Under the pieces are notes generated by a model that saw only the letters and a list, made by a program, of their open reading frames with translations, was not told where the DNA came from and did not search any database. Position numbers and translations under genes: made by a program. Source: Vitrella brassicaformis CCMP3155 (Eukaryota > Protista > Chromerida). From it: a stretch of DNA of 64,000 bases. Shown here piece by piece: positions 376-55,860 of the stretch (within the stretch, counting starts at the first letter, position 1; every line of letters starts with the position of its first letter). The DNA lies in assembly GCA_001179505.1 (NCBI GenBank), contig CDMY01000461.1, positions 1-64,000 on the forward strand. The letters run 5' to 3'.

Positions 376-3300
376 ATGAGCAGCCGGGAGGGCGGCGCGC
401 CACGGCCACCCGCATCTACAGGTACAACACATCCGAAAGATGCCGTGCGCAGATAAACACATGCCCATTCATGCACGTACATTTGGACAGAGTTCTCTTT
501 CTTTTTCTCTCCTGTGTGTCTGTTCGCAGCAGGTGCTGTGTGCGTCAAGCAGGAGCCTCAGGCTGATAGGACAGCCCCGCGAGCCATCCCGGACCTCACT
601 ATGTCACCTCCCGTCCAACAGACATCCCACGGTATTCCTGGGCAGTCATCAGACCAAACCACCGACCGCTCCTCACCCGCCCTCTGCCCACCAGGCCACC
701 ATCACGATGCGGCCTCTTCCGGCGATCCTCCTGATGGTTGTGAGCGTGTTGAGACCGAAGGGGCGCAAAGTGGAAGGGGCGGGGGTGGCGGTCAGGGTGA
801 GGTCGCATCTTCGTCACGTCACCTAAGGGGTCAGCCAGCCGCGCACAACACATTGCCGGCCCGCACACGCACCCATCGATGCGTTACATTGTTCACCGTG
901 TGGACATGTATGTATGTATGCATCTTTCTGTCTTGTGTTGTCTTGTCTGGCAGCGACGGCCCTCGAGGACCTTGAGGACGACGATGGGGAGGAAGAGGAT
1001 GAGATGAAATTGCTGATATTCCGCAGCAGCGCCTTGCTTCCTCCCACGACGACAGGTGATGAGGGCGAGAGTGATGGAGCGGAGGAAGCCCAGGATCTTC
1101 GAGGAAGACGGCGCATCCTTGCCGCTCGCAAGACGGCCAAAGAATACCACTGTGAGTGAGGGAGGCACACACGCACACAGACACACACCTGCACACGGGC
1201 AGGATGATATGCATGGGTGTGTGTCATGTCTGTCGGTGGGTCTGATGTGATTGATGCGAGGCAGGTCTGGCAAAGGATTGTCCACCGGGTGCACCTGCAC
1301 CACCAGCCGGCGACCCGGGCTGCCTGGTGACAGCCGATGACGGCCTCTGCCAGTCGTGCATGAGAGCCTACAGGGTGGCTTCCAGTATTTTTACCCGCCT
1401 CCACCGCTCACACCCCAAAGTGCGGACCACCTTCACCCCCGCCCCCCCGCAACACCACCAAACACGCCTCCACCAAGACGCTGTGACAGTCACCATCGGC
1501 CCCCTGACCGACACGCGCGGCGGCCGGTACTATCTGCGGGACCTGGTCGTCCGCCCCAGAAACAAACTTCCCAAGGCCGTGAAGCCGCGAGATTCCATGG
1601 GAGGGTGGAGCTTCTTCGCCCTCATCATCAAGATCCCCGAGGTGCTGCGGGCCCCCCCTGACCCTGACAAGGACGACTTCCGCGTGGACAGCGACGGCAA
1701 GAGAGTCTTTCTCCGGCGGAAGTCACTCAGAGATTTCAAGACGGAAACGAGAGGTGAGGGAGGCAGTGAGTGGGAGGCCGGCAGATCTACATGGATGAAT
1801 GGCGAGTGTGTTGGTTGGTTCGGTGCATGCAGCCGCCCTCGACGCCTACCCCAAGCAGCGGCTCCAAGAGCTGCGTGTCCTCAACGGCTTCGGGAAGATC
1901 AACATCTCCTGGCACAAGTCCGCGTGGGAGATCCAGTTCTATAAGTGCACCGAATCACTTCTCACCAGAACCATCAGCCCGCAAGCCCGCACACAAGAGG
2001 CCATCGACAAGGCCCTCGAGGAGGCGGTGCAGACACGCAACGAGCTGGCCAGCGACCTGGGCCGGCCACCCATTCGGTCGCTGCCGTCTCGGGAGCTTCC
2101 TGGCGAGGATCGCCACGAAGATCGTCAGGGTGACTACGAGGTCGCCATTGAGGGCAGCGGCGGCGAGCCTGAGGATGAGGACAAAGACGAGAATGAGGAA
2201 GACAACCAGGGTGATAATGCCGCGCTGACCAGCTGGAAGGAGGAACCGACAGACCCCCACCAGCAGCAGCAGCAGGACCAAGTGCACATGGGAAGGAAGG
2301 GTGGTGACGATGGGAACCGCAAGGCGCCCAAGAGAGGCAGAGAGCCATCTGGAGGTGATGCGTACACAACACACACACACATGCTCATCACCCCACCCCC
2401 TCACCCACCTGTGTGTGGTTTCTTTGGATGTGTCTGTGTGTTCTGGTGTTCAGATCCGTTTGGTGGTGCTTGTGCGCTGGAAAAGGACGCCCTCGACGCC
2501 TACGCCAAGGAGCGGCAGGCCGAGCTGCGCCGCCTCAATGGCTCCATGGCAACCCACATCGGCTGGCAAAACAACGGAGGATGGGTCATTCAGATCCACC
2601 TCCAAAACCAGCCGAAGACCTGCACATTCAGAGCGCGAGCTCGCACACGAGAGGCCGTCGACGCGGCGCTGCAGGAGGCCGTCGACAAGCGCAACCTGCT
2701 GGCCAAGAAGGTTCGCCTTCCCCCGCTCCGCTTTCCCCCCATCATTGCCTCATCCGATGGAGAGGGAGAGGGCAATGATGGCGATGAGATGGACATGGCC
2801 GAGCATGGCAGCGGGGCGGCGTCTGAGAAGGATGAGGAGGAAGAGCAGAAAGACGAACACGACCACAAGAGGCGGATACGGAGAGGAGCAGCTGCAGGTA
2901 CACACACAGACACACACACACGAACGACACGAGCGCACGCGTGTGTATGTGTTGTGTTGGGCCGCTTCTGTGCCGATTGTGGTCTCTAGGTTGGTCTCGT
3001 ACCGCTGTTGCGAGGCAAAGGGACGCCCTCGACGCCTACGGCAAGCACCGACTGACAGAGCTGCGTCGCCTCAACGGCAATGAGAGCATCAACATCGGAT
3101 GGCACAACTTATCATGGCAGATCCAGTTCTGGAACAAGGGAGGACGGCTGTGGCGGAACATCAGTCTGCCAGGCCGCACCCGCGAGGCCGTCGACAAGGC
3201 CCTCGAGGAGGCCATTCACACCCGCAACCAGCTGGCCAAGAACCTGGGTCGTCCACCTATTCGGTCCCTGCAGTCGGGCCATGGCCAGGGCGTCGCTGAG

Positions 3301-6300
3301 GGATCGGGAGAGGCCCGTGGCGAGGGTGAGGATGGCGAGGTGGAGGGCTGTGTCGGGGCGCCAGAGGACGAAGAAGAGGAGGAGCAAGATGAGACAGACG
3401 GTGAGCCACACACACAGGGGGGGAGGGCGGGGTACATTGCACAAACATATGGATGAATGTGCTGCATGTGTTGGTTACATGCAGAGGAGTACACCGGCAA
3501 GGCGCAGAAGAGGCCGATAGGCAGAGGAGCGTCTGCTGCGGCGAATGGACCACCCCAGGGTGCCTCCGTGGCCCACTACCGCCCTCCACGTCCCCCTCCC
3601 CTCCTCGCGGCTGCCACGCGCCCACCCGTGCGGCCCCCCGCACCCCGTGTGTCTGCTGCTGAGGATGCACAGATGTGTGACGCCACCGATCAGCAGCACA
3701 ATGGCGTTCCCTTCTCAGAGCCGCAAGAGAGTCGACAAGTGGATGGTAATTGGGACGAGCCGCCGTCGCATAGTCCGTCCGACGTCAGGGATGCAGCGGC
3801 ATCTGCTGCCGCGAATGTCCCACGCCTCCCCCCTTTCTGGCGTGCTATGCCACCGATGCGGCCCCCCTTCTGGCAACCACCACCATCATTCTTCGGCGGT
3901 ACGCGCAAACAGAGAGGCAGACGGATGGACGTGCGGCCGACATCTCGATGCATTCATTGATGCTGCGAACCGGACAGGTCGCGGCGGCGTGGTGATGGGT
4001 GGCATGGGTGGCCCCCCGCCGGCGCCAGGGAGTCTCAACGGGGCATGCATTGCCTTCCTCCCAGGTGAAAGAAAAGTGAATGCACAACACTCAGCCAGCG
4101 CTTTGGCAGTGTCGTTGTGGTGCCATTCATTTCGGTCAGCGGTCCGGCCCCCCATAACCCCAGCAATGCCTGGCTTGACCCGCCAGATCCATGGCACCAC
4201 CAGACCACCACCACCACCAACACCACCGTCAAACCGTCCGTCAAGAGCAGCATACGGGGACAAGAGGCTGTCAAACGTGCCCCTGGGGCGACACAGACGC
4301 ATTGACCAAACACCACCGGCAGCGGCCGCTGCTTCGGGCAGGAATGAGAGAGGGCAACCAGGCGGCAATCGGCCAGAGCACGGAGGAGGGGCATCGGCCG
4401 CTGCTCGTCTTGGTGTCCAAGTCAAGATCGCCCCTAGCGGTGGCGGAAACAGCGTGCAGCAGGGCGCCTCCGAGAGTAGCAGAACCGAAGGGCAGCAGAA
4501 ACAGCAGCAGAAGCAGATGGTGCCTGCTCGGTGTATGGAGCGCCAGCTGGTCAACCTCGACCATGACGACCTGGTCAAGGCGCTGGAGCGAGATGAGAAG
4601 AGCCAACTGGCCAGGAGAGTCCTGCACATCGTTCGAGAGGTACGTCAGACCAGCTGGTCGGTCTGTAGGTCACACAGACACACAGACGATCGATATAAAC
4701 GAGGCCATGTGTGCGTCTGTCTGGTGGTTCGTTTTTGTATGCATTTATGTATGTGTGTGTCAGAGTGGGTTCAACGGGTCTCACTTGCACGAGATGAGGG
4801 GCATGACGGCCGCCCAGATCAACAGCGACTGTCTTGGCAACGCGCCCCAGTTCCGGGGACAGGCTCTCGACCTCCGCATGTGGATCGACCAAATCTACAA
4901 CAAACACGGCGTAAGCAGGCACTCACTGAAGCAGTCTGTGAATGTGAGTCAAGTCGTGCGTGTGGTGTGCAGGGCTGTGTGTGGGCCCCCGTCCGCATCA
5001 AGGAGGAACCGACAGAGGGTGAGCGAGATGGCAGCGGTGGCGAAATGGACATGGCCGAGCACGGCAGCGGGGGGCGTCTGAGAGAGACGAGGATGAGGAG
5101 CAAGACAAACACGACCGCAAAGCGCGGAAGAGAAGAAAACGGAGAGGAGCATCTTCTGGTACACAGACATACACACACGAGTGCATTCATGTGTATGTGC
5201 TGTGTTGTTTTGTGTTGGACTGCTTGTGTGCTTGTTCTGGTCGCTAGATTCGTGTCGTGTTGGTGTGGCCAAGGAGGGGGGCCCTCTCGACCTTGAGAGC
5301 ATGGGCTGCGCACCCATCCCTTCGCTGCAGTCTCGGCTTCAGAGAGGTGGCGAGGGGGAGGCCGAGCGAGACAAGGACGGCCAAGGTGAGGATGCCGACA
5401 TGGAGGGCAGCAGCGTCGCGCCTGGGGACGAGCAAGACCAAGACGACGAACAAGACAGTGAGCCACACAAAGGGAGGGAGGGAGTGGATGCCTTCATGGA
5501 TGGATGGATGGATGTGTGGTGTTCAGATGCGTTTGATGGTGCCTCGGTGGACAGGGACGCCCTCGGCCGCTACGCCAAGCACCGGCTGGCAGAGCTGCGC
5601 CGCCTCAACGACGCGCGTCGCCTTCACGGCTCCGGGATTATCAATCTCGGATGGCACAATTCCGCATGGCAGATCCAGTTCTGCCACAAGGGAGGACGGC
5701 TGTCGCGGACCATTAGACCGCCAGGCCGCACACAAGAGGCCATCGACAAGGCCCTCGAGGAGGCCATTAACACCCGCAATCAGCTGGCCAGGGACTTTGG
5801 CCGTCCCCCCCTTCGGTCGCTGCAGTCGGGGCGTTGCCACGGCGAAGGAGAGGCCCATGGCGAGGGTGAGGATGGCGAGATGGAGGGCTGTGTCGGGGCA
5901 CCTGAGGTCGAGCAAGAGGAGGAGCAAGACGAGACAGACGGTGAGCCACACATAGGCAGGGAGGGAGGGCGGGGTGCACGGGACAAACATATGGATGGAT
6001 GGATGTGCACACACTTGTCGGTTCAATGCAGAAGAGTACGGCCGCAAGCCGCAGAAGAGGGCAAGGGGGAGAGAGGCCCCTGCAGGTAGGTGACCATGCA
6101 ACACAGATATGAATGGATCACTCACCCATCCACCCTATCACAGACGTGTGGTGGTTTTGTGTGCCGGTGTTCAGGCTCGTCTGCTGATCTGGAGAAGGAC
6201 GCCCTCGACCGCTGCGCCCAAGCAGCGCCTGGCCGAGCTGCGTCGCCTTAACGAGACCGATAGAATCAACGTCAGCTGGTACGACTTTGCATGGTCTATT

Positions 6301-16502: not shown

Positions 16503-17297
16503 GGCAGACAGACAGGCAGACACAAAGACGCACGTGACAACAATCATCCTGCTGCATGCCATGCATTCAGGCAACCAACGTGAGAGCTCGACGACTTGGT
16601 GGTCGAGGTTGTCCATCACATTGTCCCACCACGACACGGGCAGCTCCAGCATCAGCTTCTGCACGGCCCCCGCCTCCCTCTCCGCCCCTCCCTTGATCTT
16701 GATCGTCATGTGCCTCACCGTAAAGCCCCTGACCATGGAACCTCACCGTTGGTGAGCCTCTCTCTGTGGGTCAATCAATGCCTGCATTCACCTGGCTTGC
16801 TGGTCCTCCACCAGAGCGGGCTTCTCGCGCAGCAGGAACGACAACACGCCGATGTTGGCCGCCGGGTCCGACCTGGTGAAGCTGTCCATGATCCGCTCCA
16901 TCACCATCCGCGCGTGGTTCTGCATGTCGAGGTAGTTGCAGGCGGACCACAGGTGCAGCAGGCCCGTCTTGGCCGCCTCGTCGTCCGACTGGTCCGCTGC
17001 CGGCAGCGAGAGCGAGAGCGCTCCAGGGCGGCGCGAGAGGTTCTGAAGATACTGCTTGGTGGTGGCCTCGTCCTGCACGTCGTGCAGCGTGGCGAATGTG
17101 CTGATGTGGCGGAACGTGTTGGGGTGAATGTTGGGTAGCGCGATGGTGTGGGTCTCCCTCTCAGCACAGGCCATATCGCCCTCCAACATGCGGTCGAAAA
17201 ACGGCGACATATGGACGAGCAGCGACTTCTTCTCGTAGAAGACGTCCTTCTTGAGGCCGACGATGAGCTTCACGTAGCCGTCCTCCTTATGCGCCAT
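16263..17297 (-). CDS. BTB/POZ-like domain protein, paralogue 1 (multi-exon)
   Basis: VKLIVGLKKDVFYEKKSLLVHMSPFFDRMLEGDM...TIALPNIHPNTF...ACNYL fits the BTB/Skp1-like pattern. Clearly paralogous to 27659-28883. Confidence 0.75.
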
Positions 17298-18094: not shown

Positions 18095-18743
18095 CAACAT
18101 GCCCATGACATTGTCTCCCGGCCCTGGCACTCCTCCCAACAGGCCTGCGACGATGCGGGTGCCGGACTTCACTCCCCCGTCACAGCAGCAGCAGCAGCAG
18201 CGCCGAGGTGGCTACGGCGACGTCACTCCCCCGCCAGAGCACCGAAGTGGCCACGGCGTCACGCGGCTGGACCAGGACAAGGTGCAAGGGCTCGTGGCCA
18301 TGGGCTTCCCGAGGCTCAACGCCGAATTCGCGCTGCTGGCCCGCCGCAATGGTACGCACAACACCGCACAGGGCCGCACAGTGTGGGGGGGCCAGGCACG
18401 TGATGTGCACGTGCACTTGTGTGTCTGTGTCTGTGTTGGTGTGTGTGTTGGCTGTGCTGTGCTGTGCAGACATGGGGCGAGCGATTGACTTGCTGGTGAG
18501 TATGACGAGCAGCGGCAAGTGCACGCCCCGACCACCGCCGTCCGACCCGTTGTCCTCCAAGTCACGCCCCGCCAGCAGCCGCCGCAGCAGTGTGTGGGAG
18601 GAGGTCGACCCGTTCCTTTTGTATGAGGGCCAGCCCGAGGAGGAGGTCAAGGCCCTCAGGCATGAGCTTCACCAGCGCAAATGCGCCTTCTCCCGCTACG
18701 TCAACACACTCCGCAAACAGCCACAGTAAGCCCCCCAGCACCA

Positions 18744-18777
<34 letters not shown>

Positions 18778-19852
18778 TCCATCCCTGCATCCTTAGGATG
18801 GCCGACGAGATGCGGATCAGCTCGGATTCGGGCGATAGAGTGCGGCTGGTAGACTTGGACAAGAAGGCCAGATGGGAGTTGGTCCGCGACGGGNNNNNNN
18901 NNNNNNNNNNNNNNNNNNNNNNNNNNNNNNNNNNNNNNNNNNNNNNNNNNNNNNNNNNNNNNNNNNNNNNNNNNNNNNNNNNNNNNNNNNNNNNNNNNNN
19001 NNNNNNNNNNNNNNNNNNNNNNNNNNNNNNNNNNNNNNNNNNNNNNNNNNNNNNNNNNNNNNNNNNNNNNNNNNNNNNNNNNNNNNNNNNNNNNNNNNNN
19101 NNNNNNNNNNNNNNNNNNNNNNNNNNNNNNNNNNNNNNNNNNNNNNNNNNNNNNNNNNNNNNNNNNNNNNNNNNNNNNNNNNNNNNNNNNNNNCAACATG
19201 CCCATGACATTGTCTCCCGGCCCTGCCACTCCTCCCAACAGGCCTGCGACGATGCGGGTGCCGGACTTCACTCCCCCGTCACAGCAGCAGCAGCAGCAGC
19301 GCCGAGGTGGCTACGGCGACGTCACTCCCCCGCCACAGCACCGAGGTGGCCACGGCGTCACGCGGCTGGACCAGGACAAGGTGCAAGGGCTCGTGGCCAT
19401 GGGCTTCCCGAGGCTCAACGCCGAATTCGCGCTGCTGGCCCGCCGCAATGGTACGCACAACACCGCACAGGGCCGCACAGTGTGGGGGGGCCAGGCACGT
19501 GATGTGCACGTGCACTTGTGTGTCTGTGTCTGTGTTGGTGTGTGTGTTGGTGTGTGTGTTGGCTGTGCTGTGCTGTGCAGACATGGCGCGAGCGATTGAC
19601 TTGTTGGTGAGTATGACGAGCAGCGGCAAGTGCACGCCCCGACCACCGCCGTCCGACCCGTTGTCCTCCAAGTCACGCCCCGCCAGCAGCCGCCGCAGCA
19701 GTGTGTGGGAGGAGGTCGACCCGTTCCTTTTGTATGAGGGCCAGCCCGAGGACGAGGTCAAGGCCCTCAGGCATGAGCTCCACCAGCGCAAATGCGCCTT
19801 CTCCCGCTACGTCAACACACTCCGCAAACAGCCACAGTAAGCCCCCCAGCAC

Positions 19853-19886
<34 letters not shown>

Positions 19887-20003
19887 TCCATCCCTGCATC
19901 CTTAGGATGGCCGACGAGATGCGGATCAGCTCGGATTCGGGTGACAGAGTGCGGCTGGTAGACTTGGACAAGAAGGCCAGATGGGAGTTGGTCCGCGACG
20001 GGA
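18095..20003 (+). repeat. ~800-bp direct duplication flanking gap 1 (18095-18893 vs 19194-20003), about 1% divergent
   Basis: Direct comparison shows about 9 substitutions plus microsatellite indels. Confidence 0.9.
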
Positions 20004-20440
20004 GGGTCGACTCGTTCATCGAGCGAGACATCCGGTCCCGCACACCGTACCAAGGCAAGTCTAGTGACGAGCTCTGGGACCGATGGTGTGACATCAAGTG
20101 GGGCGACCAAGTCTCGGTACGCTGATTTGAGCCGGAGGAGGCACACTGACTCACCGACTCATTGACACACTGACACACGAGTGACATGAGTGCCACACAC
20201 GCATACACACACACACACACACACAGATTCATTGTATTAATGATGCCTGTGTGTGATTGATGATGTGTGTGCCTGCAGGAGTCGGCTCAAGATGACACAA
20301 AGGCCAAGCAGGACGCCAATCTGCCGCCCAGCACCTTTCAGCACCCCGCCGACGCCAATCAAATCAAAGACGAACAAGGTAAGGCATGCACTGCATACTA
20401 TGCAACCACAACGGACAGTCACACTACACCCAAGAAATAT

Positions 20441-20472
<32 letters not shown>

Positions 20473-23400
20473 ATTGATACAACAAGCCCCAACTCCTTCT
20501 TCGTTTTGTCACTGTTCTGTCTGTCCAGTTCGCTCCAATGACGATGGCGTGTTCGGCATGACGTACAGCGAGCACCGTTGGGACTTCCACCGTGTCCGTG
20601 AGGTCGAGGCGCTGCTCAGAAGACAGCCCTGGGCGGCCATGAAGACCATCGTCGTCTTTGCGTGGCGACAGTCTGACGCTGAGATGCTTGCAGATTCCCT
20701 GATGAAAACACGTACCTTAGGACACACACACCACTCAGAGAGTGACAGTGTTGTGTTGTGATGTGTTGTGGTTTGTTGTGTGCACTGCAGGTGTGTTTGG
20801 GGAGGTGGAACCCTATCACTTGGGGCGAACGAGGGGACAGCTGGCCGCGGTGATGGATCGATTCATGACAGGTGAGGAACTGAGTGGGCTATGGGCGTCC
20901 ATCCACACACACACACACACACACGCGGAGCATACAGACACGCATGACATGGCTGCCCACGTGTGTTGTGTTGTGTCGTGTCTATGTGTGTGTAGGGAAG
21001 GTTCGCGTGTTGGTTGCGACGAGTGGCGTTGACCTCGTCCACGCAGGCCACGCGCCGCGAGCGGACGGGGTCATCCACTTGACCATCCCGAAGTCCATCG
21101 AGAACTACGTCAAGGACACCAAATACACAGGCGGACAGCCGCACCACAACGGTGCGCACACACGACCGACCGACACGTCTGCACCGTACCTCTCTCCCTC
21201 TCTCTGCCTGCCTGCCTGCCTGCTCTCTGCCTGCCTGCCTGCCTGCCTGTTTGTCTGTCTGTCTGTCAGGTGCTGATGGCCACCGCGGCCATTCTCATGT
21301 CTTTGTGCGTCCCGAGGACCTTCGAATGATGCACCGCAACGCGAGCGTGCCGTTGGTGGACCCCTGGGCGGCCACCCGCCTCGCCTGCACACTCATGGAC
21401 CACCGCATCCAGCCACGTGCCAATGCACGCACCAACACCAGCATCCACACTTTCTTACACGTCAGCCGATCGGACCAGCAGCCTGAAAGTGGCCAAGGTG
21501 GTGGTGGTGGTCGTGTGGTGGCCGTCAGTCTGCCGTCGACTCACGCCATGGCGGCCCCCAACGCCCAGGCACCCGATGACGTCACGACCTTCTTCCGCAT
21601 GCTCGACGACACGATACAGCACCAGTAGCAGCAGCAGCAAGACGACCCACCCACCACCGGCACCACGCGCATCTATCCCAACGTGCCCCTCACATACAAG
21701 CTGCGCTTCCTCCGGACCACCAAGGACGCCGTATGCGAGAAATCCGACTTCATGCGGTCCTTCATGGCCACCGCCACGCAGGACGCCAATAGTGTGTGGA
21801 GTGTACGGGCGGTGGAGGCCGTCACCGCCACGGACAGGAGCCCCCCGGAGCTGTCACAGCAGCTGGCTAACTCGGCGCATGACGAGGGCTTCACGGTGGG
21901 CAGGTGCGATTGGCATGCGAGGGGCGTGGTGGTCCACATGAGGGGAGGCGAGCCACAGGAGGATGGTCGTGAGCATGCATTTGGGGGCATCAGGGCGGCT
22001 GTGGAGGCTACCCTACAGAAGCTGTATGAGGCACTCACGTACGGGAGCGGCAGACAGGCAATACACGGACAGAGGTGGGAGGGTGGGTGAGTGGACGGGC
22101 TTGTATGTGTTCTTCTCTCTGTGTGTGCGTGTATCGATCAGGCTTAGTCTTGCCAAGTTGGAGGCGGCCTTCATGGCCTTGTACCTGTCAACCAAGGAAA
22201 CCGGCGCACAGGCGCAACTAGACAAACTGAATTCGCTCGTCCAGGTACGCACACACTCACTCACTCACTCACTCACACACACGGCCCACACCGCACTGTC
22301 CTTGAATGCGTGCAGGCGTATTTCGCGCACACCGAGGGCGGTGCTGGGTGTCACCACGGCCCGGTGCGGGTGGTGTGCGAGGCCGCCGTGGGGGCAGCCA
22401 AGGCCGACGGCCTCCGTGTGGAGTCGCTGCTGGACATCTGCGGCGGCGAGATCGGCAGCGAAAGTTTCTTAAGATTCAAACACGTAAGTCATCTGCGCGG
22501 TACGTCTGTCTGTGTCTTTGCCGAGCTCAGTGCTTTCATTGTGTGCGTGTCTGTGTCTTGTGTGCAGCTGTTTGCCTCGGTCCCCATGAACAGTGACCAA
22601 GTGGACCAGTGGGGCATCAGTACTCTCAACGGCGTCAGGCATCGCACCAAGATCGCCAACCAGCTCTCACACGCCGTCAAGAACACACTCAAGAACATGT
22701 ACGAAGTCATGCAGCACATCAATTCATCCATCCATCCATCCCCTGTGCATGCGGCTGCTTTGTGTGCTATCCATGCAGGCCTCTTCTGTACGAGTTGACC
22801 GAGCGGCGACCTACCGCGAGCGCGAGAGACGTGGCTGTCAACCACCTGGCGCCTCTCACGATCGCACGGGCCCTGGCGCGCATCAACACCCACTCCCTGG
22901 TGGGCGGAAGAAACCCCTGGCTGGGACCAAACCCATCCGTCGATCCGATCCATGATGGCATCTTTGTTTCTCTATGTGTGCAGCCCAAGTCGGTGTCTGA
23001 GGCCTTCAGCCCGATCACCATGGGTGCCCCTGANNNNNNNNNNNNNNNNNNNNNNNNNNNNNNNNNNNNNNNNNNNNNNNNNNNNNNNNNNNNNNNNNNN
23101 NNNNNNNNNNNNNNNNNNNNNNNNNNNNNNNNNNNNNNNNNNNNNNNNNNNNNNNNNNNNNNNNNNNNNNNNNNNNNNNNNNNNNNNNNNNNNNNNNNNN
23201 NNNNNNNNNNNNNNNNNNNNNNNNNNNNNNNNNNNNNNNNNNNNNNNNNNNNNNNNNNNNNNNNNNNNNNNNNNNNNNNNNNNNNNNNNNNNNNNNNNNN
23301 NNNNNNNNNNNNNNNNNNNNNNNNNNNNNNNNNGCCCGCAAGACAGAGAACAACAAGAAGGGCAACAAGAAGAGGGCGGCGGACACTGAGCTGGACGAGG

Positions 23401-23615
23401 GAGGCCAGCGAGGCGCCAAGTGGCGAAAGAGGAACCATCAGGCGGGGGAGGGCAAGAAGCGGCCGAGGGAGACGACAGCTGTGGCGCCCACCACACACCA
23501 CACGGACCAGCGCCAGCGCACCGCTCTGCCTGCTCCTGCTGCTGCTACCGCTGCCGATCATAGTGAGCCCACGCACAAGTACAACACCCGGAGCAAGAAG
23601 CGGAAGGTGGTGTGA
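18099..23615 (+). CDS. UBA domain + degenerate RECQL4-like helicase C-terminal/Zn-binding-like region (multi-exon; spans two gaps)
   Basis: UBA: DKVQGLVAMGFPRLNAEFALLARRN-DMxRAIDLL. Helicase_C: TIVVFAWRQSDAEMLADSL..YHLG..FMTGKVRVLVAT..VIHLTIPKSIENYV..GADGHRGHSHVFVRPEDLR. Basic C-terminal tail ..RSKKRKVV*. Confidence 0.65.
18894..19193. other. Scaffold gap (300 N)
   Basis: Run of N. Confidence 1.
23034..23333. other. Scaffold gap (300 N)
   Basis: Run of N. Confidence 1.
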
Positions 23616-23619
23616 CCTG

Positions 23620-25900
23620 ATCTGACCCGTGTCAGTCGTACGGTATATGCATTAGTTGACCAGACGCAGTCAGTTGTGGTGGGGTGGGCTTGCGTGGGGA
23701 GGGGAGGCGTTCTGTGCTGTGCTGTGCTGTGCCACCCACCAGTGGCAGGCAGCCCAGCCACACGTCTGCCTGTCTGTCTACCCACGCCCTTGCAATGCCT
23801 ACCTGCATCCACGTAACACTCCCACAGACGGACGGACCGCTTCTCGTAGCTACCTACCTATCTCCGTCGGCCTGTCTGTCTGGCTGTCTGTCTGGCTGTC
23901 TTGGCTGATGAATGTGTGATGTGTTTTGATTCTGTCCGTCTGGCTGGCTGTCGGTCTGTATGTGTGTGAGCATGCGCCAGAGAGGGCACAACAGACACAC
24001 ACCCAAACACACACACACACTCACCACCAATCGAAGGGGAGGGAAGGAACGATGAATGGATCAACGGCACCACACATGCCGTGACACTCACAGGGGGATG
24101 GATGGATGGATGGATGACACAGTCTGTCTGCATCGATTTATGGTGTCTGTTGTCTGTCGTGTGCTGCATGGGTGTGGTGTGCTGCAATGCAATGCACGTT
24201 TGGCTGACTGACCGATTTGTCGTCTGATGCCCTTTGTCTGTCTGGAGTGCACACTGTGATTTATGTCTGTCGTGGAGTGGACGCCTTTCTTTCTTTTTGA
24301 TGCCGTTTAGTGTGTGTGCCGGTGCGGATGGATGGATGGATGGATGACTGTTGTGCGGGCGGGAGTGCCTTGCCAGGTCTGGACAGACAAGACGAGACGA
24401 GAAGGGATCGAGACATGCATGGGATGGCGGGAGGGGTGGTCTCACGTTTCCTTTCAGACGGCCACACGATGAGCGAGGCAGACAGACAGACAGACGGACT
24501 GACGGACGGACGGACAAATAGCTCGGCTGGTCGGTGGGATATATGGGTGGGAGATGAGATGGATGCGATGCCAAGTGTGGGGTGGTGGCTGTCGCGGGTT
24601 TCATTTTGTCGTCGTCGACCTATCGGTTTTTTTCGCCACGGATGGTTGGCCTGTCTTCTTTTGGAGAGTGTCCCTTGTTCTTCCTTTCTTGTGGGTGGGT
24701 GGGTGGGTGGGTGGATGGCTGTCGTCGTTTGTCGGTCGGTCTCTTTTGAGTGGGATGGAATACGCACCGCAGTCAGTCAGCGCATTCCCTCGCCCGTCAG
24801 CCAGCCAGTCAGTCAGCCAGTCCACTGCTGCCCTGACCTTGCCGTTCTCCAGGAGATAGCGGGGGATTGATGGGTAGCGGTGGATCGACGGGCAGGGCAG
24901 GGCAGGGCGGGGGCAATGCAATGCAATGCGGGGCAATGCGTGTTGGTGTTTGTTCGTTTTCTCCCCACACCGCCTCGCAATTAGTTAACCAGTCAGCCCA
25001 TTACACACATGCTGCTTTTTCCTTCCTCTGGCCGCTTCCTTGAAGAGCTGAGGAGAGGGGCAGCGATGGACAAAATCCATGAGGCTAAGGTTCAGTCTGT
25101 CGGTCGGTCGGATGGATGGATGGGGGCACGGGTGCAGTCAGTCAGTCAGTCAGTGTGTTTGCCGTCGGTCGTCGATCCGTTGGGGCCAGTCAGTCAAGGG
25201 AAGTCAGTGTGTCCGTCGATATGTATATCTTTCCCTTTCCCTTTGTCACTCTGTCTGTCGACTCACTTGGTGTGTGGGTGCGGGGGGTCCACTCCGCGCT
25301 GTGATGTTTTCCTTTCCTTGTCGCTCGGCTCGGGTGCTTTGTTTGTTCGGTGACGCGTCTGTCTTCTTTTTGGAGAGAGAGTAAATGTGTCAAGCGCGTG
25401 AAATGTGGAAGCGAGCGTCCATTCATCCATCCATCCATCAATCGCCTCGTGTGGCACCACAGCCAGCCCATCGACCACCCAGTCAGTCAGTCAATCTGCT
25501 CGTCTGCTCGTCTGTCTGTCTGTCTGTCTTGCCCACACATACAGTAGCCAAGCCCCTCCCTCTGATAAACAGCCAGCCAAGCCCCTCTCTCTCCCTGTTT
25601 CCGTGTGCGTCTATATTGTCTGTGTCTGTCTGTCGGTGTGGGTGGCCTGGCCTGCAGCCAAGCACCCACGCCAGACAGACAGACAGATTCAATCAAGGGG
25701 GCGGGGGAGTCGAGTGCGTCTGCACAGTGTGTGTGTGTGCACACGGCATGGCTGTCTGTCTGTCTGTCTGTCTGTGGCAAAGTGGCTGGGTGGGAGTGAC
25801 GTGTGCGCGCAATGATGGTGTTTGATGCAGGGAGTGTGTGTTGGCTTGACTGACGGCAAGTGTGCGATCGATGAGCGCCGACGAAGACACGACAGTGTGT
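23620..25900. repeat. Microsatellite-dense non-coding region
   Basis: Arrays of GGAT/ATCC, GACA/TGTC, CAGT, GGGT, GGGCA and GCAAT. No credible coding frame. Confidence 0.75.
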
Positions 25901-26321: not shown

Positions 26322-26621
26322 NNNNNNNNNNNNNNNNNNNNNNNNNNNNNNNNNNNNNNNNNNNNNNNNNNNNNNNNNNNNNNNNNNNNNNNNNNNNNNN
26401 NNNNNNNNNNNNNNNNNNNNNNNNNNNNNNNNNNNNNNNNNNNNNNNNNNNNNNNNNNNNNNNNNNNNNNNNNNNNNNNNNNNNNNNNNNNNNNNNNNNN
26501 NNNNNNNNNNNNNNNNNNNNNNNNNNNNNNNNNNNNNNNNNNNNNNNNNNNNNNNNNNNNNNNNNNNNNNNNNNNNNNNNNNNNNNNNNNNNNNNNNNNN
26601 NNNNNNNNNNNNNNNNNNNNN
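26322..26621. other. Scaffold gap (300 N)
   Basis: Run of N. Confidence 1.
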
Positions 26622-43884: not shown

Positions 43885-45190
43885 CTATCTATCGCTCGCC
43901 AGCCGACATGACTCGTTGGCCCCCGCCCCTCCCTCTCCCTCGCCCTCGTCTTGGGCGGAACGCGCCGGCAGGATCGGCCCGGCGATCGACGCGCGTGTGG
44001 GTGGGACGCACTGCGCCAGGGCGGCCACCACGTGGGGGTCTGGCTGCCCCACGTACGCCGACGCCCTCACTGGCCTCGGACCATCGGCCTTCTCGCGAAT
44101 GAACAGCTCGATGGCAGCCGAGGGGTCCTGCGCGTGCCTGTCGGTCAGAGCCCCCAGGACGTTGCGCTGGCCGTTGCTGGATCGCTGTGTGGACCAGAAG
44201 TTGCCGAGTGGCCCTGTGAAGGGGGGGCTGCATATGTTGTCGATCTGCACGGGGGTGACGTCGTACGGATGCGCCAGAGGTTCTCGAGCTTGAGCCGGCC
44301 GCGGAAGAACGCCGGGAAGAGGCTCGCCAGCGGCACCGTCAGCTTCCTCAGGGCGGCATCCCACCTGCAGACAGACAGACAGACAGATGATGGATGGATG
44401 GATGGATGGTCCCCCCCTCCCCCTCTCTCTGCGCGCCCCGCTGTCTCTCTGTCTCACCATAGCTGAGTAGCCGACATACGGAAACGCATGAAAATCCAGA
44501 ATGCCCCGTCCTCATTGATGGCCGGCTGGGGCACGCTGTTGATGGCATACAGGTAGTACGGCCTGTTCGCTTTCACCGCACAGAGATAAGGAGAGAGAGA
44601 CACACATATGCGTGTCGTTGGGATGCAGATTTGCGCTAGGTAGGAGGTGTAGTGCATTTGCATGTTGTGTGTGGGGGCGTGTCTCGACCGACATACCACT
44701 CGTTGAGGATGACGAGCTTCTCTGGAAAGCTAACGCCGATGGGGGTCGACTGCAAACACACATATCGGGATTTCGATACGCAAAGGACTCATCCATTCGC
44801 AGCCACTTTATCGGTCTTGTTCCTTCGACGACTCTCGTGCTGCTTCGTCCCGTTGCTGTCGTAGAATCGAGATCAAGAACACCTGCACACTCAGCCACGA
44901 AAGCGGACACCGCACGCACGATGGTCCGTTCACGCCATCAGAGGACCGACACTGCAAAAGGTACGCCTCTCTTTTGTACCTGTCTCAACTTCCTTGGGCA
45001 GCAGCTGCTTGGACAGGTACGTACGACAGGCGCTTTGTCCACTTCCCTGGCGAGACACACACATAGACATGTCGCATGCGTCTCCCTTTCGTGACAAATT
45101 CCTGTCAGTCTTTAGCGCTGTTGTGGGGAGCCCGATCAATGCTTCCTCCGGCGATTGTCCCTTCTGAAACCAACACAAACACAGGTCAGC
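43885..45190 (-). CDS. Putative multi-exon coding segment of unknown function (may be the 3' part of the multi-UBA gene)
   Basis: Spliceable coding-like exons (CRTYLSKQLLPKEVET; STPIGVSFPEKLVILNE; VKANRPYYLYAINSVPQPAINEDGAFWIFMRF; final exon ORF 43885-44368). No family recognised. Confidence 0.35.
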
Positions 45191-45499
45191 ACCCTCACTG
45201 TCACGCCCACCTGCAGACACACGAGCAGACTCCTGCACACAGACATCCACACACTTTGCACTGCACTCATGCGCGTCTCCCTCCCTCCCTCCCCTTTCAT
45301 CGTTGTCTTCGGAAGCCGGCCCTCCTTTGACTGCAGCATTAGAGCACCATCCCTACCACGAAGAAATCTCATCTTGCACGAGAGCATATATGGCTCTCTG
45401 TTATGTTTTCCTCGCCTCCATCTGATTGATTGACAGCGGACAGGAAGCTGGGCAAAGACCACCGACCAGCAGCAAATGAGGAATCCATGGAATCACTGT

Positions 45500-47128
45500 C
45501 ATGTCTCACTCTCACCTCGCCGGCGGGTGGGCCAACGATGGACATTGATGAGTAAGGAAGGGTCTTCAGATATGAAATGTAGGCGGCGATCTGACACACA
45601 TACAAAAATAGGTGGAGACATGCTTACGTGAGGTTGTTGGCAAACCCTATCGCGGCAGGTGGCCCCGTACTTCCTGAAGTCGCGTAGTCGTTGCCACACC
45701 TCCTGGCGATTGCCGGTCCTGGTAAAGGTCGAAGGGGTCGGCCTCCTCCCACACGTATCCGACTCATCAGTCCCTTACCTGTCGCGGCCTTGACGAGTGC
45801 GCACTCGGCCTGGTCCCTCTCGAGCCCAATGCTCATGAGAATCCCCACCTCCTCGTCGGCCAGCTGTGCGCTGTCACCACTGCCGTCACCTGCAGCAGCC
45901 CCCCACCCACTGCGGTCTGCGGCTAGCGGCGTGAGGACGGGAGGGTCGTTGATGTCCGGGTCGTCCATGTGTGCGATTAGCCACTCGAGGGCCGCATCGG
46001 GAGTGGCGTTGGGGACCGCCAAGACGGCACGACTGACGCACAGCACACATCAGTCAGTGACACATAGAGGTGTGTGAGGAGGGTCTCGGCTCTCTTTGGT
46101 TGTGTTTTGTTTGTGGTCACTCACTTGGCGGCGTTTTCCGAGTAGCCCATAGAGACCAGCTGCGCCACCACCATCTCATCAGGCACCTTAGCCGGGGAAC
46201 CACCATCGCCTTTGCCCCCGCCACCGCGTTTGGCAGCAGCGGCCCCCTTGACGTTGGTGCGGTAGAGGTCGGATTGGTCGTCGCTGTGGCGGGACAGCAG
46301 CAGGTCCACAGCCGCCTCGACAGCCATGCCATTGGGAACACGCAGCGCCGCTTCCCTGTGGGAGCCATCAGCCACACACAGACATGCAGGTGTGAGCGAT
46401 TAATCGATTGCATCACGCCCCTCGCTGTCTGTCTGTCTGTCTGTCGACGCGTGGGAAAGAGTCTCGTGAGATATAAAATGTAGGCGGCGATCTGACACAC
46501 ATACAGCGACGGAGATTGTGTCTCTGTATCTGTGAGGCGAAAGTGTTGCTCGCCTCCTTCTCCACCTTGAGCGCATCCCTCTCCTGCTTGACCGCCGCCA
46601 GCTCCTCCTTGAGCGTCGCGAGCTCCGCCTCCAACTCGTCGCGGGTCTTTGTCTGTCTCTGATGACAACACACGCACACACACACACCATGAATGAGCAG
46701 ACCTCAGAGATGCAGCGGCACATGTGCAGCTGTGAAGTGCTGTGCAGTTCGGTTACCGGGGGCTGCCCTGGTGGCCGCTCGATGGAGGCTTGGATGAGCA
46801 TGGCGTGGCAGCGGTCGCGGGCCTGGTTGGAGAGGGCGTTGAAGCGCAGCTCGAACTCCTGCATATATTCACGATGATGGACACAGTGAGTGAGTGCAAG
46901 GATGGACATATGTTCGGTCTCTCCTCGGAAGAGTGTTTGTTTCCATCTTAAAGCACGTACGTAACTCACGTCAATGAAGTGCACCTTCATCTCCCAGAGC
47001 TTCCACATGAAGACGACGGGGTCGTCGTCGAAGTTTGGCCAGTCGATGTCCTTGGGGTCCTCTGGAATGGTGGTCTCGTACCAGTCCTCGACGACCTCAG
47101 GATCCAGCACGTACCTGACCTCCGACAT
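45500..47128 (-). CDS. Chimeric multi-UBA protein: novel N-terminus + coiled coil + UBA-like + USP5-derived UBA-UBA cassette (3' end uncertain)
   Basis: [20 protein letters not shown]|RAVLAVPNATPDAALEWLIAHMDDPDINDPP...QLADEEVGILMSIGLERDQAECALVK parallels the USP5 sequence at 54856-55233, with identical intron positions. Confidence 0.7.
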
Positions 47129-53800: not shown

Positions 53801-55860
53801 TTCAAGTACTATGTAGGTAATGCGATTCGGTAGAGACAGGAGAAGACAGGAATGCCTGTGTGTGGTGCGTGGGCAGGAGGAACATCGCTACGAGTGCCCC
53901 CAGACCAATCGCGTAAGCAGCGCTATGTGGAAGGATGGATGGCCTGATGTATGTGTGTTGTGTATGTGCCCCCCACCAGGTCAAGTACAAGTTCAACGAG
54001 GAGGCCTTCCTGCTGCTGCCCGTCCCGGTCGAGTGCGCAACCAACAAGGAACAGGTACACACACGCGCACACAGACAGACAGACCGATACACACGCACAC
54101 ACACGGAGAGAGAGAGAGAGAGAGAGAGACTAGGCAGCCACACACAACACAACACCTGTTTCATCCGTGTGTCTTGTGTGTTTTTGCCTGCCTGGTCAGG
54201 TGCAGGAGTACGAGGAGCGCAAGGCCAAGCGACAAAAGACCGACGAGAAGGCCAAAGAGGTCTGCCAGCCACCACCCACACAGCCCGGGACAACCAACAC
54301 ACACACACCATGGGCACGTGTGTGTCCTGCGTGTCTGTGTGTATGTGTATGTGTGTGTTAGAAGGAGGAGGAGCCCATCCAGCCTCGTGTGCCCTTCAAG
54401 GCGTGCATCGACCAGTACTGCGGCCTGGGGGAGGTCGAGCTCAGATCGGAGGGACGAAATATCATCTGCCACTCACGAGTGAGTCGAACAATGGGATGAG
54501 AGAAGTGCACCCCTGTCTGTGTTGTCTGTGTATGCCACACAGGCGCGCCCCATGACGTTCCCGCCCTACCTGTGGGTGGTGCTGAAGCGCTTCTACCAAA
54601 AGCCTGACTGGACCACCGCCAAACTGGAGGCACTCGTGGAGGTCGGTAACTAACAGGCCCACACGCACTCAACAAACCGATACACACCCGACCTCTCTTC
54701 TCTTTTCTGTCCATCAGATGCCGTCTGAGATCGACCTGGAGATGTTGCGCGGCAAGGGGCCGCAGCCCGACGAGACGGAGCTGCCGTCTGAGCCTGATGC
54801 GGCCACGGCTGGTGCTGGGGGTGGTGCTGCCCCCGCTGCTGCTGCTGATGCGGCTCCTGATGAGATGGTGGTGGCGCAGCTGATGTCCATGGGCTACTCG
54901 AAAAACGCCGCTAAGTGAGAGGAAGAGACTCCTCGCCCTCTCAACTCTCTGCTTGTGTAATATGATGTCCATGTCTGTCCATGTCTGTCCATGTCAGGCG
55001 TGCCTCTCTGGCTGCCCCCAACGCCACAGCGGACGCGGCTCTCGAGTGGCTGTTCGGCCACATGGACGACCCCGACCTCAACGACCCTCCCGTCACCCCA
55101 CAGCCAGCAGCCGCCGGCGGCGGTGGTGGTGGTGGTGGTGCCGCCCAGCTGGACGACGAGAAGGTGGCGAACCTCATGAGCATGGGGTTCGAGAAAGACC
55201 AGGCCGAGTGCGCACTCCTCAAGACCAACATGGGTGAGCTGGCAGACATGGGAGGACAAGACACCTTGGTGCATATGTGTCTGTGTGTGGTTGTGTTGGT
55301 GCAGATGTGGAGCGTGCGGTCGACTGGCTGTTCTCCCACACGGACACCTTGGCTGCTGAGGTGGCGGCCATGAAGGCCGAGAGGGAGGGCGGCGGCAACG
55401 AGGCATCCAACGGTGGCGGTGATGTACAGATGGGGGGCGTCAGCAAGAAAGACCAATACCTCGATGGCGACGGTCAGCAAATCATCGGCCGTAGCGTAAA
55501 TGCCCTGTGTGTGTATTATGGTGGTGTGTGTGTGTAAGTCAGGCAAGTATTCGCTGGTGGGGTTTGTGACTCAGATGGGCAGCAACCTCGCCTGTGGCCA
55601 CTATGTGGCACACATCAACAAGGACGGCAAGTAAGGACCACTGACAAGAGAAGAGAAACACACTCTGCTCTCTCCCACTCTGAGTGAGTGGCGCCTCTCC
55701 TCCATCTCTATGTGTGTGTGGTGTTTCCTTTTCGTGTTCGTGTGTGTGACTGAACAGGTGGGTTGTGTATAACGATCGCAAGGTGGCCATCTCCGAGGAG
55801 CCGCCCTTCGAGTACGGTTACATGTACCTCTACAGGAGGAAGGACTACACGCCCAACTAG
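50858..55860 (+). CDS. USP5: Ubiquitin-specific protease 5/13 (UBP14/isopeptidase T) with nUBP, ZnF-UBP and two UBA domains
   Basis: [20 protein letters not shown]|[75 protein letters not shown]. Confidence 0.95.

Follow-up and report, generated by a model that had tools for sequence, protein, structure and literature searches.

A probable catalytically dead, RecA1-less paralogue of RECQL4 with an N-terminal UBA exon in Vitrella brassicaformis

What is a gene that carries only the second RecA lobe of a RECQL4-type helicase behind a UBA domain, and is it one of a kind? The question is raised by a locus on contig C461 of the assembly (72.7 Mb, 1064 contigs) of the chromerid alga Vitrella brassicaformis CCMP3155, of which bases 1–64000 were analysed (hereafter the window), and which a preliminary description had read as a UBA domain fused to a catalytically dead RECQL4-type half-helicase. 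We find a gene of 13 exons at 19198–23615 on the + strand and consider it probable that this is a paralogue of the V. brassicaformis RECQL4/Hrq1 helicase that lacks RecA1 and is catalytically dead. The description as a dead half-helicase with a UBA domain agrees with our results in three respects: the transcript has no RecA1, catalytic motifs V and VI have been lost, and the genome contains an intact RECQL4 at another site. Domain and PDB searches were made with single window exons, whole paralogue proteins and a family profile (A2), and the joined spliced model was used in local scripts only (translation, alignment to family loci and the ratio of nonsynonymous to synonymous substitution rates, dN/dS). 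Expression and variant evidence comes from Logan contigs of four public runs aligned to 19194–23700; runs X3 and X4 are DNA (introns covered) and X1 and X8 are spliced RNA (with GT..AG joints not present in the DNA runs). The RNA contigs are mosaics of near-identical paralogues and Logan contigs pop bubbles, for which latter reason the finding that the DNA runs show a single variant at each site was rejected as weak proof of a single copy.

The helicase relationship of the locus appears only when whole paralogue proteins or the family profile are searched, and exon-by-exon Pfam and PDB searches of the window returned a weak UBA match only, its individual exons being too short to give others. 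The best PDB match of the 953-aa paralogue P0001 is human RECQL4 (5LST; E 4.6e-6), and profile A2 likewise matches 5LST best (E 1.6e-14, followed by a bacterial RecQ at 1.5e-7), in an alignment that continues through the HCHLFLQP..EDLRELRRH segment at 5LST residues ~380–425, in line with the RECQL4-type RecA2 lobe proposed originally. Helicase_C scores 20.7–25.2 bits in the family, as tested on paralogues 92–97.5% nucleotide-identical to the locus. RecA2 starts in exon 5 (20529–20711) with the motif IV region KTIVVFAWRQSDAE, and this is the first exon common to the whole paralogue family. The lobe continues in exon 6 (20791–20871; EPYHLGRTRGQLAAVMDRFMTG) and exon 7 (20996–21151), the latter containing a degenerate motif V (21007–21039, VLVATSGVDLV) and a degenerate motif VI (21106–21151, YVKDTKYTGGQPHHNG). 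In exon 8 (21270–22038; 66.5% identical to the intact RECQL4 on contig C300) follow the RECQL4-specific post-helicase segment, ADGHRGHSHVFVRPEDLRMMHR, and then the family C-terminal region. Motifs V and VI of the locus read VATSGVDLVHAGH and KDTKYTGGQPHHNGADG, those of the C300 parent VATTAFGMGID and QETGRAARNG. Motif V has lost its FGMG (VATSGVDLV, not VATxAFGMGID) and motif VI (YVKDTKYTGGQPHHNG|ADG) is without arginine, both as first noted. Neither Pfam DEAD nor TIGR00614 matched the locus, and the transcript of exons 1–5 contains none of the RecA1 motifs (0, I, Ia, II and III). Two hallmarks of the RecQ4 family, the RecA1 lobe and catalytic motifs V and VI, are thus missing, and the locus is not to be classed as a helicase. 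Past 5LST residue ~425 the sequence does not detectably match RECQL4 from other organisms, but it is 58–70% identical to the corresponding part of C300; Atlas features for the R4ZBD region gave leads only, with RecQ_Zn_bind clusters at 0.85–0.88.

A separate RECQL4 had been named as something to look for, and C300 carries one with motifs 0, I, II (DEAH), III, IV, V and VI all in place (FGLESFRDGQ, MPTGAG/GKSLCYQLPAL, CFDEAHCIS, LTATAT, VATTAFGMGID and QETGRAARNG). It scores 41.9 bits with Pfam DEAD and 43.5 bits with Helicase_C, its best PDB match is RECQL4 5LST (E 3.8e-21), and its spliced C-terminus is encoded by a transcript-sized public contig (P0009). The gene lies on the minus strand at ~1000–7800 of C300:1–10000, where its RecA1 region is broken by 300-N gaps at ~4460–4760 and 5434–5740.

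The 5′ part of the C461 gene is of a different kind. Exon 1 (19198–19450) holds the start codon, a poly-Q stretch and UBA helices 1 and 2 (about 19366–19450); on its own it matches Pfam UBA_7 with 19.9 bits (E 6.9e-4, profile positions 1–27 of 48, cut-off 27). The score stays under the Pfam threshold because an intron splits the domain, helix 3 lying in exon 2 (19581–19836; helix 3 at 19581–19612). The UBA region of C461 shares 42% identity with a genuine UBA (Pfam UBA, 30.8 bits) in a downstream gene of the window (55128–55250, + strand), and the partial UBA_7 match, this identity to a domain that passes the Pfam threshold and the third helix in exon 2 together make a UBA domain probable. A weaker, inverted UBA-like stretch occurs at window 45792–45884 (− strand). 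After a linker, exon 2 enters a segment resembling the RECQL4 N-terminus (from ~19718), which continues in exon 3 (19906–20116) to ~20095; exon 4 (20279–20378) is a linker and the last exon unique to the locus. In a 10-kb search, exons 2–3 proved homologous to N-terminal exons of the C300 RECQL4 (tblastn, C300 7725–7372, E 7.6e-8, 42.7 bits), and the matching stretch of C300 sits upstream of its helicase core, collinear and on the same strand. Pfam Drc1-Sld2 and PDB gave no match for the exon 2–3 region, and a genome search found the 5′ exons (1–4) nowhere else in the assembly. Since exons 2–3 are RECQL4 N-terminal sequence, the locus looks like a RECQL4 from which the RecA1 region has been removed and to which a UBA exon has been added, as judged by sequence comparison.

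The junction between these two parts is documented in RNA. One 1117-nt RNA contig (X8 record 23) covers 5′UTR-E1-E2-E3-E4-E5, so the UBA exon is spliced on to the RecA2 exon without a Walker A or DEAH exon between them, as the preliminary description had it. Exon 5 shows 0 differences between RNA contig and window and 9 to the sister copy on contig C29, and a three-base variant specific to the window (20597–20599) is seen in RNA. Joints seen directly in RNA are 19450|~19581 (in X8 record 23), 19836|19906 (RNA covering 19588–19836), 20116|20279 (GT..AG in X1 and X8), 20378|20529 (exon 4 likewise having GT..AG joints in X1 and X8), 20711|20791 (GT..AG), 22483|22568 (GT..AG), 22698|22779 and 22899|22984; junction 20871|20996, between exons 6 and 7, is shown by loose RNA contig ends in X1. 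A 103-nt intron (22039–22141) is spliced in RNA, with a base difference at 22038, and introns of the gene are 69–162 nt long. The remaining exons are exon 9 (22142–22244; RNA contigs and family comparison), exon 10 (22316–22483; sites conserved in the family), exons 11 (22568–22698) and 12 (22779–22899), both with GT..AG joints in X1 and X8, and exon 13 (22984–23615), the last, which is split by a gap, encodes a Lys/Arg-rich tail resembling a nuclear localisation signal and ends in the stop TGA at 23613–23615. The form of motif VI depends on the exon 7/exon 8 junction, for which two donors had been considered. The GT..AG pair 21151|21270 is conserved in all five truncated copies, annotated paralogue proteins read through likewise, and the intact C300 has its motif VI intron in the same position and phase with the same split Gly codon (AAT G|GT..AG|GT, compared with AAC G|GT..AG|GT at the locus). 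Because the donor 21151|21152 matches C300 in position, phase and Gly split and is conserved in the five copies, the long form of motif VI is the correct one; this donor, the counterpart of the one in C300, yields GGQPHHNG.

The locus is not singular. A six-frame genome search with P0001 found full copies on C377, C455, C384, C29, C461 and C300, together with more divergent relics of the family (C465) and fragments of its tail (C176 and C13). The family comprises at least five RecA1-less copies (C377, C455, C384, C29 and C461) plus the older relics on C465, so that the unrecognised, singular architecture first supposed turns out to be one of several truncated RECQL4 duplicates, which form a family specific to Vitrella. 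All five replace the AFGMGID of motif V and the arginines of motif VI with the same conserved non-catalytic sequence. The five have introns in common, which C300 also has, and the family therefore arose by DNA duplication rather than retroposition. C461 resembles the other half-copies from a point within intron 4 (~20403–20453) onwards; the N-termini of C377, C455 and C384 differ from it and are of low complexity, and C29 is a 3982-bp orphan contig, starting at a repeat boundary, that is 94–97% identical to 20452–24585, introns and 3′ flank included. With exon 8b as query, phmmer against 1.84 billion representatives returned Vitrella proteins only, after two further matches (Sushi repeats and TPR) were judged spurious. 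Word searches found no relatives outside Vitrella except generic RecQ matches to RecA2, and a literature search for Vitrella and RecQ gave nothing relevant and no description of such a truncated RECQL4 family.

The five half-copies also show signs of maintenance. Every GT..AG site is kept and the frame is open from exon 5 to exon 13 in all of them, with the exception of one TAG in C461, and identity among copies is 92–97.5% in exons versus 86–94% in introns. Pairwise Nei-Gojobori dN/dS is 0.40–0.61 overall, 0.20–0.47 in RecA2 and 0.42–0.72 in the C-terminal part, so that the dead lobe evolves under purifying selection among the paralogues. With open reading frames (ORFs) and GT..AG sites kept and dN/dS at 0.40–0.61, the family behaves like a maintained pseudo-helicase, or pseudoenzyme, at the level of its sequences. 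Identity to C300 is ~38–40% in RecA2 and ~67% in the C-terminal region, a pattern that suggests a phase of rapid change once RecA1 had been lost and constraint thereafter.

Further family-like sequences were met in the course of these searches. On C465:10001–20000, an older dead copy (45–62% identical) occupies ~2950–5100 on the minus strand, with an intermediate motif V (VATSAFCVNL), no GRAGR and exon-5-like sequence duplicated across a 300-N gap; parts of it are also placed at L011 448–534 and 3435–3545. Upstream of this copy, and in the same orientation, an ORF with a glycine loop resembling that of kinases (YGKGSFAWAFKG..VAFK) may be another 5′ partner. C465:729–2186 is 80–94% identical to window 44654–47093, which suggests segmental duplication. 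The fragments at C176:48788–49033 and C13:182787–182921 are isolated pieces of the basic C-terminal tail exon (59–74% identical) with no other family exons nearby. The transcriptome-derived protein P0008 (UniRef A0A7S1JWJ1) looks chimeric: an acidic, unrelated N-terminus is joined at a poly-Q (CAG) run to a family part that switches between C29-, C455-, C377- and C300-type segments.

Several observations weigh against the preferred interpretation of C461. The UBA score is below the Pfam threshold; the R4ZBD likeness that had been proposed is undetectable by sequence, no match extending past 5LST residue ~425; and an AlphaFold2 model of P0007:1–640 from a 9-row alignment is poor (mean pLDDT 37.7). 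Locus-specific expression is seen only for exons 1–5 and parts of exons 11–12, and the exon 7/exon 8 junction 21151|21270, which decides motif VI, is not among the RNA joints listed above. When C461 is compared with C29, dN/dS in the C-terminal part is 1.10. With three outgroups to polarise the changes, 16 nonsynonymous and 5 synonymous ones fall on the C461 branch, a nearly neutral ratio (C29: 12 and 8); these counts are small and no more than suggestive of relaxed constraint. Finally, an in-frame TAG (21626–21628, + strand) interrupts the CAG run of exon 8, the eighth of 13 exons, where C29 has CAG and the other three half-copies Gln or His. It is codon 533 and leaves a product of 532 residues that comprises the UBA, the N-terminal segment and RecA2. 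Glutamine decoding of this TAG in an alternative genetic code was rejected, as it is a single site at which the paralogue CAG is explained by a C-to-T change, and so was an intron removing it, there being no plausible GT..AG pair and the paralogue proteins reading straight through.

How the TAG is explained determines what C461 is. We lean slightly towards the T at 21626 being a real nonsense allele, the remainder of the probability falling to an error or an alternative allele. If it is real, C461 may be a young transcribed pseudogene that lost constraint after its split from C29, changed CAG to TAG and has a functionless product, a serious possibility to which we nevertheless assign somewhat less than an even chance. 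None of the other four copies has the TAG, the nonsynonymous-to-synonymous counts of its branch exceed those of C29, and annotators split the locus, with P0002 beginning after the stop; moreover, a transcript whose frame ends prematurely in exon 8 of 13 would be expected to undergo nonsense-mediated decay. Against this, the counts do not differ significantly between the C461 and C29 branches, no splice site is damaged, splicing and expression of the 5′ exons are documented, and the TAG falls within a length-variable CAG repeat, where the assembly is weakest. In another explanation, plausible but on balance rather improbable in our view, the TAG is an assembly error or rare allele, C29 is an alternative assembly of the same locus and the real gene is intact at ~1020 aa. 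The orphan nature of C29, its closeness to the window and its start at a repeat boundary would fit, as would the mosaic of C29-type and window-type variants in the runs. The start of the window's second contig (19898–20191) disagrees with every run at 8 sites, and at the 3′ end, within 23535–23663, all four runs (DNA and RNA) carry the C29-type form only (23559–23663), which differs from the window by a 3-nt insertion and five substitutions and ends ...KKRKLT stop; the window form ...KKRKVV is in no run. Yet a divergence of 5% is high for alleles, other window-specific variants (20597–20599) are confirmed in RNA, and no run was shown with C at 21626. A public-contig search for records encoding P0002 found none, and an exact DNA pattern spanning the TAG site had no match in metagenome contigs.

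A third explanation holds that sequencing gaps conceal RecA1 and that true splicing restores GRAGR, making the locus an ordinary active RECQL4; the N runs inside the span are the sole point for it, and we judge it extremely improbable. Three gaps occur in the window, each a 300-N placeholder. Gap 1 (18894–19193) hides no exon of the gene: the ~800 bp to its left (18095–18893) match the opening ~810 bp to its right (19194–20002) at 97% identity, and this left-hand stretch (copy A, + strand) repeats the start of the gene, with an ATG at 18099, the UBA exon, exon 2 and the beginning of exon 3, before ending at the gap. The same correspondence of left end and right start is found at gap 3 (26322–26621; overlap 910 bp, 100% identical) and at the C465 gap, and unmerged contig overlaps are a habit of this assembly. 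Variants of copy A at 19226, 19753, 19780, 19942 and 19945 are carried by RNA contigs. Gap 1 is therefore an overlap artefact, given its geometry, the parallel of gap 3 and the RNA contig that links copy-A variants to exon 5 of the window; and since the left contig end repeats the right start, the 5′ exons are single and the RNA carries copy A, the stretch 18095–19193 is redundant. Of the span first assigned to the gene, 18099–23615, the 3′ limit stands, but 18099–19193 consists of a redundant assembly copy and a spurious gap. With gap 1 an artefact and RNA joining exons 1–5 directly without an extra exon, a RecA1 domain hidden in the gap is excluded. Gap 2 (23034–23333) falls within the final exon, a long way downstream of the helicase core. 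Contig C29 closes it with 208 nt (70 codons) that restore the frame of the Lys/Arg-rich tail, and an X1 RNA contig spans it from 23033 to 23334; it conceals about 208 nt (~70 codons) of exon 13. The homology of the motif VI donor to that of C300, giving GGQPHHNG, and four paralogue proteins with the same dead motifs also speak against an active enzyme. Just upstream of the gene region, an ORF at window 16788–17297 (− strand) looks like BTB/POZ when judged by eye (KLIVG..KSLLVHMSPFFDRMLEG).

The preferred interpretation, a dead paralogue derived from RECQL4, can be set beside several known systems. With human RECQL4 (5LST) and yeast Hrq1 the locus shares RecA2 and the HCHLF..EDLRELRRH-type segment, and with C300 the position of the motif VI intron; unlike them it has no RecA1 (motifs 0, I, Ia, II and III), no FGMG and no motif VI arginines, carries an N-terminal UBA, exists in multiple copies and has no demonstrable R4ZBD or zinc ligands. 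Inactive helicase cassettes are known from the C-terminal part of Brr2, where one serves as an interaction platform with both RecA lobes inside an active enzyme; the helicase fold is kept without catalysis there too, whereas the Vitrella locus has a single, stand-alone lobe. WRNIP1 (UBZ) and ZRANB3 (NZF) are replication-stress factors that read ubiquitin and are active ATPases. They would be analogous to the locus in placing a ubiquitin-binding module on a helicase-family protein, and differ in that the module is UBZ or NZF, not UBA, and the ATPase is active. Sld2/Drc1 is presented in PMC4227796 as a yeast stand-alone, non-helicase homologue of the RECQL4 N-terminus. It resembles the locus as a RECQL4-related protein without helicase activity, and the locus retains homology to the N-terminal exons of C300; Sld2/Drc1 is the N-terminus only, whereas the locus keeps RecA2 and the C-terminal region and has no detected Pfam Drc1-Sld2. 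Catalytically inactive hrq1-K318A, according to PMC13586618, is dominant-negative through DNA binding. By this likeness an inactive RecQ4-family protein could still occupy substrates or partners, although hrq1-K318A is a laboratory point mutant with both lobes and the locus a natural truncation kept as a gene family.

The 3′ part of the C300 RECQL4 was duplicated at the DNA level with its introns, giving at least five copies that start at the RecA2 exon, and C461 alone has four unique 5′ exons, encoding the UBA and the RECQL4 N-terminal-like segment, which are spliced in RNA directly to the RecA2 exon. Lacking the lobe with Walker A and B and the arginine finger, the products would neither hydrolyse ATP nor unwind DNA; the basic tail would place them in the nucleus. 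RecA2, the RECQL4-specific C-terminal region and the basic tail might bind DNA or protein partners of RECQL4 non-enzymatically, as an adaptor or competitor, and the UBA of C461 would read ubiquitin. This combination of a non-enzymatic adaptor or competitor with a ubiquitin reader is a tentative and rather doubtful assignment. As assembled, C461 would yield only the UBA, the N-terminal segment and RecA2, or may be becoming a pseudogene. More broadly, and with equally modest expectation, the family may consist of RecA2-only pseudo-helicases derived from RECQL4 and held under purifying selection, nuclear adaptors or competitors that exon shuffling has retargeted by differing 5′ modules; these would be the UBA in C461, a low-complexity region in three others and possibly the kinase-like region on C465.

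Of the human RecQ helicases RECQL4 is the most poorly understood, and there is still debate over which of its functions depend on catalysis. The value of the single locus C461 is limited by its premature stop and patchy assembly, and its UBA fusion suggests one way in which such modules may be redirected. Across the family, RecA2 has diverged more from the parent yet is more constrained among copies (dN/dS ~0.3), which points to a non-catalytic job. By retaining RecA2 with the C-terminal region time and again while dropping the ATPase lobe, this lineage provides a natural separation-of-function experiment.

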